This document shows positions 43,876-54,068 of a stretch of 64,000 nucleotides of DNA, one piece after another. Source of the DNA: Utricularia gibba (taxonomy: Eukaryota > Plantae > Magnoliophyta). The notes below the pieces were generated by a model, which was given only the letters and a program-made list of their open reading frames with translations, made no database searches and had not been told where the DNA came from. A program made the position numbers and the translations under genes. The first letter of the stretch is position 1. Every line of letters starts with the position of its first letter. The stretch covers positions 4,464,001 to 4,528,000 of the forward strand of contig NEEC01000004.1 of NCBI GenBank assembly GCA_002189035.1. Reading direction: 5' to 3'.

Positions 43876-44039
43876 TCCATGATGCTCTTTTTTTTTTTTT
43901 TCTTTTTGAATCCTTCAAGATACAGGAATTGGTTACACACAAGATGATGATGTATCAATTGATCAGATAGCTGAAAACATACTGCTTTATATCTGTGCTT
44001 TTTGGGACATAACTTGTTCCTTTCACTCGGTTCCTGCCA

Positions 44040-44465
44040 GTAGTAGGAGCATGAGCAGGCGCCATTCCATATATGAGTGATGAGAGCGAACACCAGCTCG
44101 ATTCACGCGCTGTGTCTCAGGAGTGGAGCCTCCTCCTCCCCTTCTTCCAAATCGAACATGGCATCCATAGCCTTTCATGGATGCCAGCTTTACAGTTCAC
44201 TGATCTTTCAGGTATATCTCTCTTCCACATGCCTGGACAAGCACGCCTAAACTAGGCTCACCTCGTTGAGATCCACAGATGCCTTCTGCATTAGGCGGAA
44301 CAACCTTAAGACCGCCATGGATGAGCAGCAGCGCTTCCATCAAAACCAGAGGTTGCTATGCTCATAGGCAGAGAGCATCGAGTTCCATGTGGCCAAATGC
44401 AGATCCTTGATTTGATCAAAGAACCACCTTACAATCTATCCTCAGTGCAGAACTCCGGGGAACCT
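44040..44465 (-). pseudogene. Decayed PLS-class PPR gene (At5g43790-like relic)
   Basis: Minus frame reads *G*IVRWFFDQIKDLHLATWNSMLSAYEHSNLWF*WKRCCSSMAVLRLFRLMQKASVDLNEVSLV*, with stops at 44444, 44438, 44342 and 44249. Confidence 0.75.
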
Positions 44466-46991
44466 AAAATAAGCCACAACGTTAAACCAGCAAAAAGCAA
44501 GCTACAAGTGGGAAATCATCGCATGATGTAATAGGATTTCAGCCAACTTCATGGTGAAAAATCGCAGTATCATTGGCGAATTTGGCCAAGAAATACATCG
44601 AACGATTAACTGGGTATGGGCTACCAATGAAGAAAAACGCGATCTTGAAAAAGTGAGCAGACGAAGAAACATGTACCTTGAGAACCCAGGAAAAAAAAAC
44701 TTCAATCGAGCATCCCAGATTAGATTCCATACCTCCCCCAACCGGACAAAAGGAACCATCTATATGAACTAGTTGCCTCGATTACAGCCGGCGATCCTCA
44801 GAGGGAATTCTCTAATCCTCGGCCTCAGCCCCAAAGCTGAACTGATTCGCGCCACCGGAGAGAAAGAAAATACCCCTCAATTGGGCAAAACGAAACTACA
44901 GCTCAAGATTGTTTGTGGCGGACCGGAACTGAGAGGACCCAAGTGCTGGAAAACCGCATTACCGGCCCATCTCTTCTGGTACACATTCGGGTCCCCGGTG
45001 GCGCCCAGTTCAAGAGTGAGGAATCTCGGTGGAGGGAAAAAGAAAAAAGGAGGGAGCAAGATACAGTAGTAGTAGGGGTGGGTATACGTTTCGTCCCTTG
45101 TATGGCCGGCTGATGCCGCAGACCGCCTGCGATGTTGGACTACGATGTCTCGAGAGACCAAGCAACCGGACGTGACAACACTAGCAGCACAAGCTCATTC
45201 TTCTCAGGGTTCACACCTCCGTCGTCTATGCCTTGTCCCCCGTAATCGCCATCTGGGCCCCCAATCCTCCAACCACCCAAATCTTCCTCAAAAACAAAAC
45301 AATACAAACACACAACACAAAGATGAAGAGAGGATACCACACGATTTATTCACTTTATATAGTTTAATTTTTAATTATTTTATTGTAAAAATAAAAATGA
45401 TTTGTTTTATAAATTATTGAATTTCTTAATTTTATATTTCAAGAAATTAATTAAAAATTATATTATTCATTTTTATATGATGTAAAATATATATTTATAT
45501 CATAAAATTAAATTTTGTAATATAATTTTATATTAACATATAGAATAATCTTACAATATTAAAATTGACTCTAATCCAGAAATATATATATATATTGAAA
45601 TTAAAAACACCACATAGAGAGAGAAATCCACGTTTTAGCTTATATTTCACCTATATTTTCGAATGAATGATGTTTTATAACTTTAAAAAAAGACTGTAAT
45701 ATGATACAAAATATACTATAATAATATTTAAATGATAATTTACATAATGCATTCAACCTCTAACACTTAGAAACCTTTGAAATGAAAAATTTGATAAGAA
45801 ATTATAAGAAAAGGGAAGAAAAAATAGAATTATTGAAAAACAAACCATTATAATAAAAATGAAAGTAAAATTCATTTTAATACAATAATGAGAATTTATA
45901 CAAAACTTATAATGTATGAAAAAAATGTATTAATTCGATTTTGTGGCAGTAAAATAAGAAGAAATGTAAAATACAAAATAGGCCTCGGAGAGCTTCTTCA
46001 CTGCAGGCCATAAATAGGAGTCGGTTGCATGTCACTTTTGCGGCACGTGACCGATCAGATCCTTCCTCACCACAAACTAACTGGGGACTCCCGCACCCAA
46101 TCAATTCCCATCTCTTTATTAAATTTTATTTTAAATCAATTTTAAAATTTATCATACGCGTGTATGAGAAATAACGAGATTAAATTCAACCATTTACGCA
46201 TTTTAAAACCTTAATTTATTTTAAATACTAATTTAATCTATTTATTTCCATGCCAATTTCCACGTCCGGTGTGGTCCACGGTAGGTACTTTGTGGACGCG
46301 GGAGTATCAAGTCCACTTGGTCTTCCATAACACAAAAGAAAAGTAAAAAGGTATTTTATTTATTTCTTTAATAATTTGGTTTCCCCAACACGGATGTGAT
46401 TCCTGACAAATCTAACGGCCATAAACGCTCTGGGTTGGGCTTACTGCACCGGCGACATACTATACATTTGACTTGGCGGCGCTGTCCACCGGAGGTGGGG
46501 CCGTCTGTGAAAAAGCAGCAAAAAAAAAGGTGACTTCGATGGAATCGGGCGGCTTCCTCAAATCTGCAAAATCGATCAATTCACGATTTTGAATCCACGT
46601 TTTGGTTTTCCGGTGTGGGACTAACCCTAATGGGGGAAACTGGCTTCCAGGCCGGCCGCCGGTGGCCAGGATTGGGGGCTTGCCGGGGACTCGCGGTGCA
46701 CAATGTGTATGAATTCTATCGGCTAGTACGGAAATCTGTGAGCTGCTAGAGATGAAGAAGGAGAGACAGAGAACAAAAAGGAAGGATTTTTATTATAAAA
46801 TATGAAAGAAAGATAGCAGTGCAAGAAACCCGAAGTGGGTTTCATCTATGGAACATGTCCCGACAGCACAATGGAAAGCAGAACATATCCATAGAAAAAA
46901 GAAAGGAAAAAGATTTTGCTATTCAAGTTTCCCGGCTGAGGAAGGATTAAAAAATTAGGGTTTTCAGTTTGTGTGTTTTGGTTTTTATTCA

Positions 46992-47092
46992 GACAAGAAG
47001 AATGAGATGAAGCTACCACATGATCTGATCTTTCCACAGCAGGAGGAGGAGAGTTTAGATCATGCTGGCAGCTTCATCAGATGCTCTTGCAA
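46992..47092 (-). ncRNA. MIR167: MIR167 precursor hairpin; mature miR167a-5p at 47056-47076, star at 47006-47026
   Basis: The reverse complement of 47056-47076 is TGAAGCTGCCAGCATGATCTA (miR167a); the 3' arm is AGATCATGTGGTAGCTTCATC; a pyrimidine-rich leader lies upstream on the minus strand. Confidence 0.96.
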
Positions 47093-50039
47093 GATAAACC
47101 CGCAGAATAAAAATCCAATCTTTAGAGGGGGGAGGAGAAGAAGGGGAAGAAGAAAGGAGAAAAAGGGGGTGCTCAGAATTGTGTGGGAGAGGATGGGATA
47201 TAAATAGGGGATTCCAGAGGAAGAGGTTTCGAAAGTAGAGAGTGGTTTTAGTGAATAAAAGGTAAGATATAAGTGAAGCAAAAGCAAGCACGAGAGCAAA
47301 TACACACAAAGAAAAGAGAAAAAAAAAAAAAAAAGAAGACGAAGAAGAAGAAGAATCGAAAGTCATCAAGGTTCCACTGGTTCTCAGTGGTCCCAATCCT
47401 CAATTCATTTTCAAAATTGAAAATAGCCTCCTACTCCATCACTAAGATTTTCCCTCTTACCAATCCCCCAATAACATTAAACACTTACCCATATTCCATT
47501 TTTCCTTTTTCTTTTTCCCCTTAGTACAGGGACACCGTGTCCTAAAGTATCCACCCCTTTTGGGACACCCCTCTCTCGACCCTAATCATGTGTCCAAAGA
47601 CAGCGAACCCACATCAGACCAACCAACCATACTACAGAATTCGGGGCTCAGACGTATGTATCTCAGTGGTGAGACTTGCTATATCAGTAAGCAATGGTAT
47701 TAATCTACATGAATCATTATCTGATATATGGTTATGGTGGTTGTGCTACATGACAAAGTCGTACATTTCATTTGTGGCAATGAGGATGACAGCACTTAGG
47801 AGACTAAAAAAAGGCCCCCTGAGAGACTAAAAAGCTTAGAGAATGGGCATATTCCGTGACTAAAAACGATTGATTTGTTCGGCACGGCTCATGCATCCAC
47901 TCCACTGCGCAAGGGGGCATCCGTCATCCACCTTTTGGTCTCCAGAACACCCTAGTGGTATACAACAGCACTTCTTCAGTTGGCGTGCGCACTGCGCCAG
48001 TTGTTAGAAAAAGAGATTCTGTCTCACCTTGCAAAAACAATAGCTTATTTATTCAACATCTCTTGTTTTTCTGTAAGATTCATGGAACTTGTTCACTGTG
48101 TTGAGACACTTGTCTGGTTATCAGGTTCAGCACAGTGTCCCGACGAGGAATCCCACCCTGAGAAGATGGTTTATTATGAATAGAGATGGAGGTGAGGGGA
48201 TGATGAGGGAATCCATGAAGGGGTTTTGTCGTATTGAAAGGAATAGAATCTGTTAGGTGTGCAGTTCAAATGTCATCCCTCTCTCGTTTCTTTCCAGTTG
48301 TATGCATCAAGCGAGCCAGCTGGGAGAGTTACAAATCGATTCCCGTTTACCTATATGCATTAAAAGAAAGTGACCTGTGATGGATTTTTTTTAATCATAA
48401 TTTCACCCCCTCCAGCTTCTGGTCTCTCGAAATTATTAGCAGAATACCGATGGCAATGCCTACGTTTGCAGATCTGATCTGCATTCAATTCTTCCTCTGA
48501 AACGAAAACCCTTGTTCCCCCTATCCCCGATTGGACGCCTGATTCCGTGATTAGGTGTGTGTCAAAAACCACATTATGGGGAGCTTCTGCTAATCATTTC
48601 ACCACCTCTGATGCGAGTGTCTCTCACGTTTAATCCAATACTCTACTGAAATTGAATCCAGAAAACACCCCAAGTTCTCAATTCTAAATATTAGACAAAC
48701 AGAGCTTCCATTTCTAAACTTTCGAAGTAGAAGCAAACTTGAGGGTTGATTTTTTTTCATGCTGGTTAAATTCGATTTCCAACGAGACAACCGTGAATGA
48801 AAGAATCAGGGGCAAGAGAGAGAGAGGGAGGGAAGGAGTTAATGTGGCTGGCGCGGGCGGCGGGTCGCCGGGGATCTGCTGATCTGACCGGCGACGCCGA
48901 CAGCTTTTGTCCGGAGAACAAGAGTAGATTTGCATTCAGAAATCCACATGTTATTTCTTATTTAACGCCCTCCCTCCTTCCTAACCCTAAATTCATTACA
49001 CATAAATACCCGCATTTAATCCAATCAACGGAAGCTGTCCCCACTCAACTCGACTATTAAGATTTCGATTCTCATTTATTGCGCAATTAAATAAATTGTA
49101 TATTTATTAAAAAATAGAAAAAAGGAATCAATTAAACTCATTGCATTTTGCATGTAGACACAATGAATCTACTTTATAGCGTTTTAAAATCAGGTTCAAA
49201 TTATTCTCCCATTTATGTATGCCTCTAGGTTCAATTTATTTCAAAAATATTATATAAAAAAAAATAATTATCTAATTTAATATTTCTAATTTTCTTAAAA
49301 AATATTGAATGAAATCTTAAAAAAGGAATAGGAACTAACCCATTATTTTAACCTATTTTTAGTTTTTTTAAAAGTAAAAAATAAAAAGTATAAATTTTTT
49401 ATAAAATTCAAAATAAAATTGTGGGTATTCTTCAAAATCATTTTTTTATATGAAATCCACACAATTAAAAATGTATCTAAAAAGATCAAAAGTAACCTAT
49501 TTTTGCTTTTAAACACTATCTAGTATAAATGGATGACAAAAAATTTACAAAAAGCCAATCCTTATTTTCTATCCCACACAAAAATTATATAAAAATATGT
49601 TTTTTTCTTTTTTGAAAGATCCTAATTTTAATTTTTAAAAGTAAAAAATATTTGGAATTGGAGTTGGGGTTGGATGAAGCAAAAGGAGGGCAGAACTAGA
49701 GATGACAGTCACATAAATATGTATAAATATTAAAGAAATGGGGGACTCAAGGTGGTCCATAAATCCTTATTGTGATGGCTACAGGGTGACAGCAGAAGGG
49801 GCTGCCCCAAGGGCTACAATCTTTGTATTGAACATAGGCTGGTCCTCATCCCACTCCTCTTCACACAAAATCAAATCAAGATTGGTCAATATCTTATTTT
49901 ATCTCATACATTCACTCCAAAATTTTTAATTCAGAATGATCCATTTTTTCACACATCATCAAAGATGACAAGATTTCTAATACATTCCAGAATCACACAA
50001 AGATTAATCCAACAGGTTAGGTTTCATTTGGATAGCCAC

Positions 50040-50130
50040 CCCCATGGCTCATTGCAGTTTGATGAGGTAGCTAGCAGCATGCAGCATCTGCTCTTGATGA
50101 TTCTTTCATTTGGGAAGATAGAAACCCCAT
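50040..50130 (-). pseudogene. AGO10: Candidate relic of the ARGONAUTE10 N-terminus
   Basis: CAA ATG AAA GAA TCA TCA (a) GAG CAG = QMKESS/EQ, then LIKLQ*AM, versus recalled AGO10 MPIRQMKESSEQHLVIKTHLQNTM. Syntenic slot fits; the match is short. Confidence 0.4.
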
Positions 50131-50256
50131 TGGGTGGTTCGGTTCATATTAGGGTTTATGGAGGAGGAAGAAGGCAACCTGTGTTAGGGTTGACAGAGGA
50201 GGTTAGTGATTGGATGGATGGTTCTAAGGGTGAGTGCACAAGTGAGTGAATGGATC

Positions 50257-50305
50257 GGGGTGAAAAGGGCGATGGGGAGTGCAGGGCAGGGCGGGGCAGG
50301 CTGGG
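50257..50305 (+). other. Potential G-quadruplex (seven G3+ tracts)
   Basis: G runs at 50257, 50267, 50274, 50284, 50289, 50293 and 50303, with 1-6 nt loops. Confidence 0.7.
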
Positions 50306-50625
50306 CGGCCAGCTGAAGGAAGTTAATGGGGTGCTGTTCATTAATGGTTTACTGGCAGCCCCAGCCATGAATAGAAAAAGACAAGGTATTTAAAGCTTTG
50401 CTCATTGCTTCTCGTTATGTCATTCACAAGAGGACTTCATAAATCTGCGACCCAGGAGCAGCAGTCAAACACACTGCATTTTTATTGATGCTGCGCGCAG
50501 CTGCTGCCCCTCCTACATTTAATCATCTTCTTCTTCCTCTTCCTCCCCCCAGCACCAAATTTCGTACTTGCCTTTTTTCTTTTTACAGCAGAAGAGACTG
50601 CGTGCTCGGCAGTCGTTGACGTAAA

Positions 50626-50709
50626 TGGGCCGGGCCTGCTTTGGGAGGAGCTCACCAGGCTATTAGCAAAAGCTCAGGAATGGAGGAGGGTGGCCCAAAC
50701 ACAGGCCCA
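50626..50709 (+). promoter_or_regulatory. Site II element cluster upstream of the DMC1 relic
   Basis: TGGGCC at 50626; GGCCCA at 50692 and 50704. Confidence 0.5.
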
Positions 50710-50817
50710 GAGGTTTAAAGTAACGTCTAGTTCGAAAGTCGGTGGGCGCTTGCCGTCTCTTTGCCGCGCTCGTGTTCTTCCTGGAAAACTACCTATAGAG
50801 TGATTTGGTATTCACAA

Positions 50818-51532
50818 ATGTTTGCTGCTTTTGAATTTTTTTTATCAAGTTTGATGTATAGGGATGAAGAACCGAGTCCGCTGTTCCAAATCGCTGATAT
50901 ACAGTGCGATCGAAGATGAGGAGGAGTTTCGAGAAGCAATCGATTGACCTAAGCTTCTTTTTTTAATTTTCCGGGTTTCCTATTGTTTTCAGTCGAATTC
51001 CGTGCTGTTTTCTGATTTTGGAAATGGGAATTCTTCGTTAACACTGATATCTTGATTGTTCATTTTTTCCTGATGGCAATGTGGATTCAGAAGACCTCGT
51101 TAAGTAGTAATGGGTTAACAACTGGTTATGTCATGCAATGCTGGGACTTGAACTGACTACTGAATGACGTAGAGATGCACACCAAAAAAAATTGAATACT
51201 GAATGCCCAAACTATGAGTTGTAATGCATATCAACTTGCCTATGTTAACCAGGACTTGGCTCTGGGATCAGGGGGCTGTCTATGAGGCCAATGTAGATTA
51301 CCTGTAGACAAGATAGCGGGCAAAGGCTAACAATGGGTTTTCTATGTATTTGATGCTCCAGATCCTCCTGAACCTTAAGCGATATCCCTTTCAGTCTTCA
51401 AGTTCTTGAAACGTGCTTTTAGCAATCAAATTCTAGAGTTGAATGAATAGTCAGTCATTGCTTGGGCAAGTTTCCTTAGCTTCACAAGTTTTGCAGGTTG
51501 CTCCTCGTGGAATTGCAGATGCAAGGGACTGA
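50818..51532 (+). pseudogene. DMC1: DMC1 meiotic recombinase pseudogene, internally deleted
   Basis: Collinear fragments: MFAAF (50818), DEEPSPL..IEDEEEFREAID* (50863-50947), MHTKK (51175-51189), GIRGLS/EANVD/VDKI (51264-51315), GKG*QWVFYVFDAPDPPEP*A (51319-51381), AT-AC intron, VLQVAPRGIADARD* (51488-51532). Confidence 0.93.
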
Positions 51533-51870
51533 TGGGGGTTCTCCCTTTGGGTAGCCTCCACCACTCAGTAACTTCTTGCTGTCAAATTCAGATATGTAAG
51601 GGCAGATGAATATGGCGACCATCATTCATGGAAACATTACACAGTTGCTCTTGCATGCATCAACTTTCCAGGCAAGACTACTTTCCTCTCTTCCAGATTC
51701 TGTAATGCTTCATATTGTTGCTCTAACAGATCTGTGATTAGAAGGCATTCAGTAGATGTAAAACACTGCATAAAGAAAGCATACGATGTACAAGGCATGT
51801 TTGTCATAAACGATGAAGTAAGTTTTTGTGTAGGTGAATTAACTGGGAGTAGGATAGCAGAATATCTTAA

Positions 51871-52277
51871 GGCTTCGTTTAGTTTGTGGGTCCGAGTTTA
51901 ACTTGGGTGTGAATTATTTGGGTATTTTTAAACTTATAATCATGAGTTTTGTGGAAAAATGTGTTTGACCACCCGATTAATATTATTTAGATTTTTTATT
52001 ACATGAGTTTTGAATGCTGATTTATAAAAGATGTGTTTACCATTATTTATGTATGAAATTACTTAATTTCCACTTAAAATTGAAAAATAAAATATATTAT
52101 AAGATAGGATATATTTAAACATACCTTTGGATGGGTTTATATAAACCCATATTTATGGGTTACTGATTAGTTTATCTAAGCTTATAGAATAAATTTATAT
52201 TTTACAATAACCCACGTATCAATCATTCTAAAATATTAAATTTATCTATAAACATGGTTTGCGAACCAAATTTGGCC
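51871..52277. mobile_element. Tourist-like (PIF/Harbinger) MITE
   Basis: TAA on both flanks (51868-51870, 52278-52280); degenerate TIRs GGCTTCGTTTAGTTTG / GGCCAAATTTGGTTCG; AT-rich interior with a 20-bp palindrome at 52131-52150. Confidence 0.5.
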
Positions 52278-52765
52278 TAAATCATATAAGATAATTTTAA
52301 TTTTTTTATGTTATATTAGAACATTTTTTTGTATAAATAATATTCACTTTTTTAATATTATGTAAGATAATTTCAATTTTTTTCACTCGATTTCTTTATC
52401 ATTCTTCATTTTTTAAAATAATTATTTTTTTTACATCCTTCTTTTCGATTTATTCAAATAAATCGATATTTGATGTATATTTTTAAAAAATTATGTACTT
52501 TTAATTATAATTTATTTAAAATGATATTATTGTTTAACATATTTTTATACTTCCTAATTATCAAACAAAATCTAATATTTAAAATATTTTTATTTCTCAT
52601 GTAATATAGCTATTAAAACATTATCTCGTATATCAATTTTCCCGAAACAAATGCAAATTGAGATCAAAATGCAGAATGCGAGAAACATGATCGTAAGTAT
52701 AAAAAATTATTCATAGTGCATAAAATAGAAAATCAAGATGGTTATTTTTTTAAATGGCCAAGTTT

Positions 52766-53035
52766 CACGTGGCATAACGTATGGCTTCAGTTGAGTTTCG
52801 AGCAATAAGATTGGAGCCTAGGAATGAAGCAGAAGTTGGTGTCGTTGCAAACTCCCTATTGGGGGTTGGAATCCAAGGTCTCCCTTGCTCTTGATTTAAA
52901 AACAAAAAACAAAACAAAGGTGGAATTTTGATCACCACCACTCAGGAGGAGGTACTAGAAGTTTCCGGTGGCCAAGTCAGGTACGTGGAAGTTGTTCCGC
53001 TTTCCATTTTGAGATGCTGCGGACACCGACGTGTC
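52766..53035 (+). promoter_or_regulatory. G-box/ABRE cluster in the ELIP promoter
   Basis: CACGTGGC at 52766, ACGTGG at 52983, ACGTGTC at 53029. Confidence 0.55.
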
Positions 53036-53154
53036 CGCGGAATATCCATGTGTTTGTTTGTTGGCACTTTTTCATTCTCTTTAAATTCCCACCATCCGGC
53101 AGCATCCACCATCAACTCCAGCCCAGATTTGCAGTCCAGTATACATTTCCGGCA

Positions 53155-53749
53155 ATGGCAATGGCAATGGCAATGTCCAGCAGCATCCTCTCATTCGTTC
53201 GATCAAATCCCTCTGTTGGGCTGCCACCCAAGCACACGATGAAGAGGATTTCAAATTTCCGAGTTCGAAGCATGGCGGACGTAAGTTTTGTCTTCAATTC
53301 CTCTCTAGTTTTAAGAAACCCACAGGAAATATTGAATCAAAGTTGGATCTTGATGTCTTTTTTCAGGGACCCGAGGATGCTGTACCCGAGGCGCCACCAG
53401 TGAAGGCGGCACCTGGGTTTTCCCAGATCCTGGCGTTCAGTGGTCCCGGCCCAGAGAGGATCAACGGTAGGCTGGCGATGATCGGTTTCGTGGCGGCGAT
53501 CGGCGCCGAGTTGATCAACGGACAGGATTTGCTCCTCCAGCTGCAAAACGGCGGCGTGTCGTGGTTCTTGGGACCAGCGCATTGCTCACCGTGGCCTCTT
53601 TGTTGCCGTTGTTCAAGGGAGTGACGGCGGAGTCTGAATCCGGCAATGTAATGAGCTCAGATGCCGAGCTTTGGAATGGCAGATTTGCGATGCTCGGTTT
53701 GGTGGCTCTGGCGCTCACCGAGTTCGTCAAAGGAGGAGCTTTGGTTTAA
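53155..53749 (+). CDS. ELIP: Early light-induced protein; 1-bp frameshift at ~53570 (sequencing error or pseudogene)
   Basis: Exons 53155-53280 and 53367-53749; [19 protein letters not shown], then the frame shifts at WFLG to [44 protein letters not shown]. Confidence 0.9.
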
Positions 53750-54068
53750 AGAAGCCCTCACCAGAATTCCAAGTGAAAAGCAAAACTTTTTGTTAGCTTT
53801 AGTACAGGTCGTATGTATGAATTCTACATGTGGAATGATATTTGCAAGCCCTGGTTTTTATTACAGAAAACCACCCATGACACACATTAGTTACATACTT
53901 CATCCCTTCAAGCTGACAAGCGTATGGTGGAGCTAAGCTCCATCATTTTATTGTTCTACTTATACAGTGCCGTAACAGTGCTACCGTTTCTCTGATCTCC
54001 AAGGGGCACATCAAAGCTGAGGCACAGTTTTATCAGATGTGCCACATAAGGGAGGGGGAGATGAGTTT

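Follow-up and report, generated by a model that had tools for sequence, protein, structure and literature searches.

Positions 50818-51532 on the plus strand of a 64,000-nt stretch of the Utricularia gibba contig NEEC01000004.1 (hereafter the window) had been read, in an initial annotation made from the sequence, as a pseudogene of DMC1 whose RecA core was removed by an in-frame fusion. The locus raises the question of whether these scattered fragments really derive from DMC1, how the middle of the gene was lost, and whether the relic is the discarded copy of a duplicated gene or the last trace of the only DMC1 that the species had.

Identity of the relic

No long open reading frame was present at 50818-51532 (plus strand), only short pieces in shifting frames. 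In order, these pieces read MFAAFE; ..PLFQIADIQ followed by AIEDEEEFREAID and a stop; ..QCWDLN, a stop and LLNDVEMHTKK; GIRGLS; EANVD; VDKIAGKG, a stop, QWVFYVFDAPDPPEP, a second stop and A; and VLQVAPRGIADARD with its terminal stop. All six fragments named in the initial annotation were present in the sequence at the coordinates given there. Together, the pieces are the collinear remnants of a plant DMC1 gene, comprising exons 1-4, remnants of three introns, the final 63 nt of the penultimate exon, the last intron and the last exon. The order of the exons is that of plant DMC1, and the positions of introns 1-3 and of the last intron are shared with it.

Single pieces stayed at chance level when compared with Arabidopsis DMC1 (Q39009, sequence as printed in PMC9957857): tblastn searches of the 64-kb window with both ends of the protein gave E values of 0.4-1.6 for the three best matches, amid unrelated ones. 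The collinear chain of matches scored 52 at the relic locus, and the second-best place in the 64-kb window scored 24. With 400 shuffled queries, the mean was 25.7 (sd 4.3) and the maximum 44, and 0/400 reached 52. Each piece is at chance level alone, but their collinear arrangement is significant. In the chain test, an ungapped match counted from 23 raw BLOSUM62 units upwards, each segment cost 22, and successive segments could lie up to 300 nt apart. These parameters were picked after two looser versions had failed to set the locus apart from shuffles (z 4.2, where the best shuffle equalled the real score, and z 0.5), and for this reason the test is taken as supporting evidence only. A minus-strand chain at 49.9-48.1 kb, considered as a second relic, came from incomplete tblastn hit lists and was rejected, its stricter score of 23 being at the shuffle mean.

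When the pieces were joined by X into one read-through, the sole NCBIfam match among 18,950 models was TIGR02238 recomb_DMC1 (E 0.011), in two stretches, the better of which covered the last 33 profile positions. Among 177,635 PDB sequences, the best six matches of the read-through were all DMC1 (human, yeast), and their alignments were collinear over residues ~14-82 and 294-339; the 29-aa piece of the last exon alone matched nothing in PDB. These protein-level statistics are weak by themselves (E 0.01-0.07). Additionally, full-length plant DMC1 proteins were compared with the window by tblastn, as the initial annotation had proposed, and found a significant match in the 64-kb window at the relic locus only (E 4e-5 to 5e-3). 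In blastn comparisons, the penultimate-exon piece found its best DNA match in Phtheirospermum DMC1 (81% identity over 75 nt, E 9e-15), and the last exon matched DMC1 genes with an E value of 3e-8 and 77-83% identity across four of them. Overall, the relic exon DNA was 72-85% identical to the DMC1 genes of Lamiales and Vitis.

RAD51 belongs to the same superfamily, and the C-terminal 34 residues of the relic give a weak Pfam Rad51 match (E 0.27). A better match to RAD51, which the initial annotation had named as the finding that would speak against DMC1, was seen neither among the NCBIfam models nor among the PDB chains matched by the read-through. The motifs MHTKK, VFDAP and GIADA(K/R)D of the relic are found in the retrieved DMC1 sequences, and synteny points to the DMC1 locus. 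With the collinear chain, the recomb_DMC1 profile, the PDB DMC1 chains and the blastn matches all in agreement, the reading as a DMC1 pseudogene holds, and these sequence comparisons support a derivation from DMC1 and not from RAD51 or another gene.

Remaining exons and introns

The genomic DMC1 loci used as references were those of Phtheirospermum japonicum (L001), Handroanthus impetiginosus (L002), Orobanche gracilis (L003) and Vitis rotundifolia (L004). The exon 1 remnant (50818-50835) retains the start codon and reads ATG TTT GCT GCT TTT GAA (MFAAFE, compared with MIAALK in Vitis). Intron 1 (50836-50861) is shrunk to 26 nt, against ~70-110 nt in intact Lamiales DMC1 genes, and has lost its donor GT and retained its acceptor TATAG. 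The exon 2 remnant (50862-50948, ..EEPSPLFQIADIQ / AIEDEEEFREAID) is 77% identical to exon 2 of Handroanthus and Orobanche (blastn); it carries +3 and +1 insertions and a lysine codon changed to TGA at 50945-50947, and CT stands in place of its GT donor (50949-50950). Intron 2 (50949-51090) retains the acceptor CAG at 51088-51090.

The exon 3 remnant (51091-51189) is 75-79% identical to exon 3 of Lamiales. It has acquired several indels and, at 51154-51156, a TGA in frame, and it no longer has the GGTG donor that would follow AAGAAG. The MHTKK fragment described previously was found at the end of this exon, whereas the residue N read after it comes from intron sequence. Intron 3 (51190-51252) is alignable in part to the Lamiales intron, with its acceptor CCAG retained.

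The exon 4 remnant (51253-51318) reaches the last codon of the exon with 84-85% identity to Lamiales. It holds GIRGLS, EANVD, VDKI (ancestrally VEKI) and GCG (ancestrally GTG), with two insertions of +2 and a 10-nt deletion. The initial annotation had assigned VDKI to the KVDKI of GLSEAKVDKI, which turned out to be mistaken: VDKI (GTAGACAAGATA, 51304-51315) is the VEKI of ...CEAVEKIV (CTGTAGAGAAGATAG), and the KVDKI of GLSEAKVDKI is represented by the EANVD piece. At this end of the exon, CTGTAGACAAGATAG and CTGTAGAGAAGATAG match at 14/15 positions. An 11-nt duplication-like feature around GTAGATTACCTGTAGAC, an earlier idea, was discarded in favour of the 10-nt deletion that the alignment shows within this exon.

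Of the penultimate exon, the last 63 nt remain (51319-51381), in which two GAA codons have become TAA stops (51328-51330 and 51376-51378). The last exon (51488-51532) is ungapped, is 76-83% identical to the four DMC1 genes and ends with a TGA stop at the ancestral position. It is followed by a probable 3' untranslated region (51533-51809); in two RNA-labelled runs, contigs stop at 51806 and 51809.

The last intron (51382-51487) is U12-like with AT-AA ends, starting with ATATCCCTTT, carrying TTCCTTAG inside and ending with CACAA. An AC at 51484-51485 was rejected as its end, which is the AA at 51487. A ATATCCTT start, a branch-like box and a GCAA/GT end (the slash marking the intron boundary) are common to the orthologous last introns of Phtheirospermum (L001:11057-11275), Handroanthus (L002:6671-6903), Orobanche (L003:12962-13134) and Vitis (L004:13880-14160). 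In plant DMC1, the final intron is conserved as a U12-like AT-AA intron, with a TCCTTAAC-like box ~10 nt from its end and then ...GCAA/GTTTT. Many public plant DMC1 gene models (here P0009, P0011, P0012, P0017, P0122, P0131, P0133, P0156 and P0158) read through this intron and acquire false C-termini (...AEAISF...) in place of ...AEAVFQITPGGIADAKD. This misreading in public models is a practical by-product of the analysis.

Three site II-like motifs were found upstream of the relic at 50626-50709 (plus strand; TGGGCC at 50626 and GGCCCA at 50692 and 50704), 115-193 nt from its ATG. Their density, 3 in 84 nt, compares with 0.69 per kb in the window. The earlier proposal that a site II promoter persists was correct as to the motifs, but their reading as the ancestral DMC1 promoter is unsupported because the intact DMC1 genes of Orobanche, Vitis and Handroanthus have no site II-like motifs in the 400 nt before the ATG.

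Loss of the core and subsequent decay

At the deletion junction (51318/51319, plus strand), exon 4 directly abuts sequence from within the penultimate exon, in contiguous DNA. Exon 4 reaches its final codon (GTG, now GCG), and GGCAAAGGC, which encodes the GKG within the penultimate exon, follows immediately. Intact genes read ...AAGATAGTG/GTTAGTG (...ATAGTG/GTTAGT) at the left breakpoint and ...GGAAR/GGCAAAGG at the right one. Since VDKI is the VEKI that closes exon 4, the deletion spans from the exon-4 donor to inside the penultimate exon. The fusion is codon-to-codon and in frame; the junction, which the initial annotation had suggested inspecting for microhomology, has a 1-2 nt G/GG overlap, and its placement is ambiguous within ~3 nt. 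A DNA contig (run X4) and an RNA-labelled contig (run X8) both cross the fusion.

The loss at the junction amounts to ~1.7-2.9 kb, with ten exons and 221 codons (Arabidopsis DMC1 residues 89-309). The lost segment carried both Walker motifs (A and B) as well as the DNA-binding loops L1 and L2, and tblastn with plant DMC1 proteins gave no credible match to this core (residues 89-309) anywhere in the 64-kb window. The central claim of the initial annotation, removal of the RecA core by an in-frame fusion, is borne out by the contiguous junction and by the absence of the core from the window. Its details needed adjustment: exon 4 is indeed fused to GKG, but the right breakpoint lies mid-exon and the penultimate exon is not preserved from its start, and the large core loss, put at ~230 codons, comes to ~221.

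We consider it likely that the relic decayed in place, having lost its core by one deletion, as the losing copy in a duplicated block. The sequence shows one genomic deletion, which fused the final exon-4 codon to an internal part of the penultimate exon, and the G/GG overlap would fit end-joining or illegitimate recombination. Stops, frameshifts, donor losses and the collapse of intron 1 then accumulated in what was left, presumably by neutral erosion.

The left breakpoint coincides with the exon-4 splice donor; for random deletions, such a coincidence is expected only ~1-2% of the time. An RNA-mediated deletion, in which the exon-4 donor was spliced to a cryptic acceptor in the penultimate exon and a reverse transcript of the product recombined with the gene, would account for a left breakpoint within ~3 nt of that donor, for the codon-to-codon in-frame fusion and for the AG that precedes the right breakpoint in Handroanthus and Phtheirospermum. 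This route appears improbable. It is weakened because the AG is not conserved, Orobanche and Vitis having AA before the right breakpoint, and because the exact position of the junction is uncertain by ~3 nt. Moreover, the four flanking introns are still present, and a plain deletion with a G/GG overlap yields the same sequence in fewer steps.

The relic contains at least four stops (at 50945, 51154, 51328 and 51376) and frameshifts in exons 2, 3 and 4, the donors of introns 1-3 are lost, and the longest frame from the relic ATG is 33 codons. Over alignable exon positions, the relic is 76-77% identical to Lamiales genes and 73% identical to Vitis, compared with 93.6% between the intact genes of Orobanche and Handroanthus and 83-86% between Lamiales and Vitis at the same exon positions. 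In ungapped blocks (150 nt), the mismatches between relic and intact genes were distributed over codon positions 1/2/3 as 11/6/18, whereas those between intact genes were, for example, 0/0/13. First and second codon positions are ~17% substituted in the relic and nearly frozen among intact plant DMC1 genes.

These changes on all codon positions indicate long drift without selection, and no purifying selection on the relic codons was detected. From the usual neutral rates of plants, the relic would have been unselected for tens of millions of years. Meanwhile, the features of a functional DMC1 are missing: the ATPase motifs and L1/L2 are absent, and there is no continuous frame with usable splice sites. 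As judged from its sequence, the 50818-51532 locus is a non-functional DMC1 pseudogene.

Chromosomal setting, transcription and relation to known systems

The relic lies between a MIR167 hairpin 3.7 kb upstream (46997-47087, minus strand) and an ELIP-type gene 1.5 kb downstream (53014-53936, plus strand). MIR167 was not found in the window at the Rfam gathering thresholds, but a permissive scan detected the hairpin (RF00640, 60.6 bits, E 9e-11; gathering score 100). The mature miR167 20-mer is present exactly at 47057-47076 (minus strand), and the hairpin fold has a z of -6.9. The Rfam score of the hairpin was higher on the plus strand than on the strand with the exact mature miR167. The ELIP-type gene (Pfam Chloroa_b-bind, E 2.9e-4, one exon) is expressed according to RNA depth, with a GT..AG joint at 53280/53367 in RNA-labelled contigs.

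In Arabidopsis, MIR167a is AT3G22886 (PMC3074149), DMC1 is AT3G22880 (PMC9957857) and ELIP1 is At3g22840 (PMC3889287). The order MIR167, DMC1 relic, ELIP is thus the Arabidopsis order AT3G22886 / AT3G22880 / At3g22840. The statement in the initial annotation that DMC1 adjoins MIR167a in Arabidopsis agrees with these locus numbers, and the relic sits in the matching slot. Mature miR167 was absent from the flanks of the four foreign DMC1 loci (L001-L004) over their fetched extent.

In Vitis and Orobanche, the downstream neighbours of DMC1 are DUF3700 and/or EMP24 genes, which we take to correspond to Arabidopsis AT3G22850 and AT3G22845. When the Vitis, Orobanche and Handroanthus flanks were compared with the window as six-frame pieces, neither EMP24 nor DUF3700 nor any other neighbour gave a detectable relic. 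Because EMP24 and DUF3700 traces are absent, the block has lost more than the decay of one gene would remove. Gene order and sequence place the relic in the ancestral DMC1 slot, within a block that has lost several genes. An Arf-family gene at 43.1-43.9 kb of the window may, as we assume, correspond to Arabidopsis ARFC1 (AT3G22950). The ~9 kb from this gene to ELIP (44000-53000) contain nothing besides the MIR167 hairpin and the relic.

After polyploidy, fractionation in maize and other palaeopolyploids proceeds by loss via short deletions. The relic would be the loser in a duplicated block that underwent such fractionation, and the DMC1 function would be carried by an intact copy at another place in the genome. 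A fractionated duplicate with such an intact partner is the most likely origin, much likelier than a lineage-level loss. In two reports (bioRxiv 10.1101/482521; PMC6813927), duplicated meiotic recombination genes are described as returning to single copy faster than average, in agreement with the earlier remark that meiotic genes quickly become single-copy after polyploidy. Several points count against the overall reading of a DMC1 gene that decayed in place as a losing copy, namely the missing EMP24/DUF3700 traces, the breakpoint at a donor site, the weak protein statistics and the tuned chain test.

A relic in the ancestral DMC1 slot would also be expected if this were the only DMC1 locus of the species, which would then depend solely on RAD51 or bypass normal meiosis for most of its reproduction. 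Such a loss of the sole copy is very unlikely because DMC1 occurs in all major green-plant lineages surveyed (PMC9957857); moreover, the relic is old, with ~17% change at constrained codon positions. If true, it would mean a flowering plant without the meiosis-specific recombinase, performing or avoiding meiosis without DMC1, and the relic would matter much more only if the species has no intact DMC1.

Any RNA made from the relic would be without function. In three RNA-labelled runs, RNA depth was confined to ~50.5-51.8 kb and then to the ELIP gene, with zero depth at 49.0-50.5 kb and 51.84-53.0 kb and low word depth (2-10) on the relic; the kinds of the runs (RNA/DNA) were guessed by the tool, and the contigs are strandless. 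The contig of run X7 is unspliced (51091-51806) and starts exactly at the first base past the intron-2 acceptor. The RNA-labelled contig of run X8 (50794-51594) crosses the exon-4/GKG fusion without mismatch. These observations are evidence, short of proof, that the relic is transcribed at a low level.

The relic and the fusion were also present in DNA contigs of run X4, from another accession. One X4 contig has a joint at 49256-51974 that skips 2717 nt and thus the whole relic; its shorter side has 21 letters and is AT-rich, and the skip is probably a repeat artefact, presence/absence polymorphism being the alternative. The X8 contig, from a more diverged accession, shows three further skips of 199, 84 and ~109 nt, one of which takes most of the U12-like intron. 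Splicing was rejected as their source, their ends being non-canonical (GA..GG, AC..CC, GA..AG) with extra letters between the sides. The X8 skips look like extra deletions in a diverged accession, reflecting continued erosion by short deletions.

The confinement of RNA-labelled coverage to ~50.5-51.8 kb ahead of the ELIP gene, the coinciding contig ends at 51806 and 51809 in two runs and the survival of the U12-like splice signals and the ATG might suggest that the old transcription unit was retained for a functional non-coding RNA or a short N-terminal peptide. We find this highly implausible in view of the low depth (word depth 2-10), the substitutions on all codon positions, the three destroyed donors, the longest frame of 33 codons from the ATG and the three further deletions that the X8 accession appears to carry in the relic unit. 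Least credible is capture by a transposon of the Pack-MULE or Helitron type, of which fused exon fragments with introns kept are typical, since the relic lies in the ancestral DMC1 slot and would not be a moved fragment: its neighbours keep the ancestral MIR167-DMC1-ELIP order, its start codon, upstream region, first four and last two exons and 3' end are all in order, and no terminal inverted or long direct repeats of at least 16 nt bracket it (46-56 kb; only short AT-rich or low-complexity pairs).

Decay in place of a losing copy thus remains our preferred reading. The relic is a real, well-defined DMC1 pseudogene, and the type of object is already known. Its value lies in being a clean, mapped case of the death of a duplicated meiotic gene, by one core deletion and then slow erosion, through which the start codon, the stop codon, the signals of a minor-spliceosome intron and some transcription have persisted. 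It would add a molecular case to the reported return of meiotic recombination genes to single copy after polyploidy.

Compared with intact plant DMC1 (Arabidopsis AT3G22880, Vitis, Orobanche, Handroanthus), the relic has the same start and stop positions and the same type of last intron, but it lacks ten exons, 221 codons and Walker A/B and has no reading frame left. The Phtheirospermum japonicum locus L001 (protein P0015) is a partial DMC1 as well. At L001:9977-11320, only a DMC1-like C-terminal half is present, from QLPINMKGGNGK on and with odd substitutions, and no N-terminal DMC1 exons were found within 10 kb upstream; this may be another truncated DMC1 copy. It has the PEPEA motif and the last intron in common with the relic, and of the DNA compared it matches the penultimate exon of the relic best (81%). 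However, L001 keeps the C-terminal half of the core without the N-terminal exons, whereas the relic keeps both ends without the core. Set against fractionation relics, the DMC1 relic is distinguished by the left end of its deletion, which is a splice donor, and by a partner copy that we infer; like them, it has decayed in place between kept neighbours, with an internal deletion, a tiny overlap at the junction and neutral drift.
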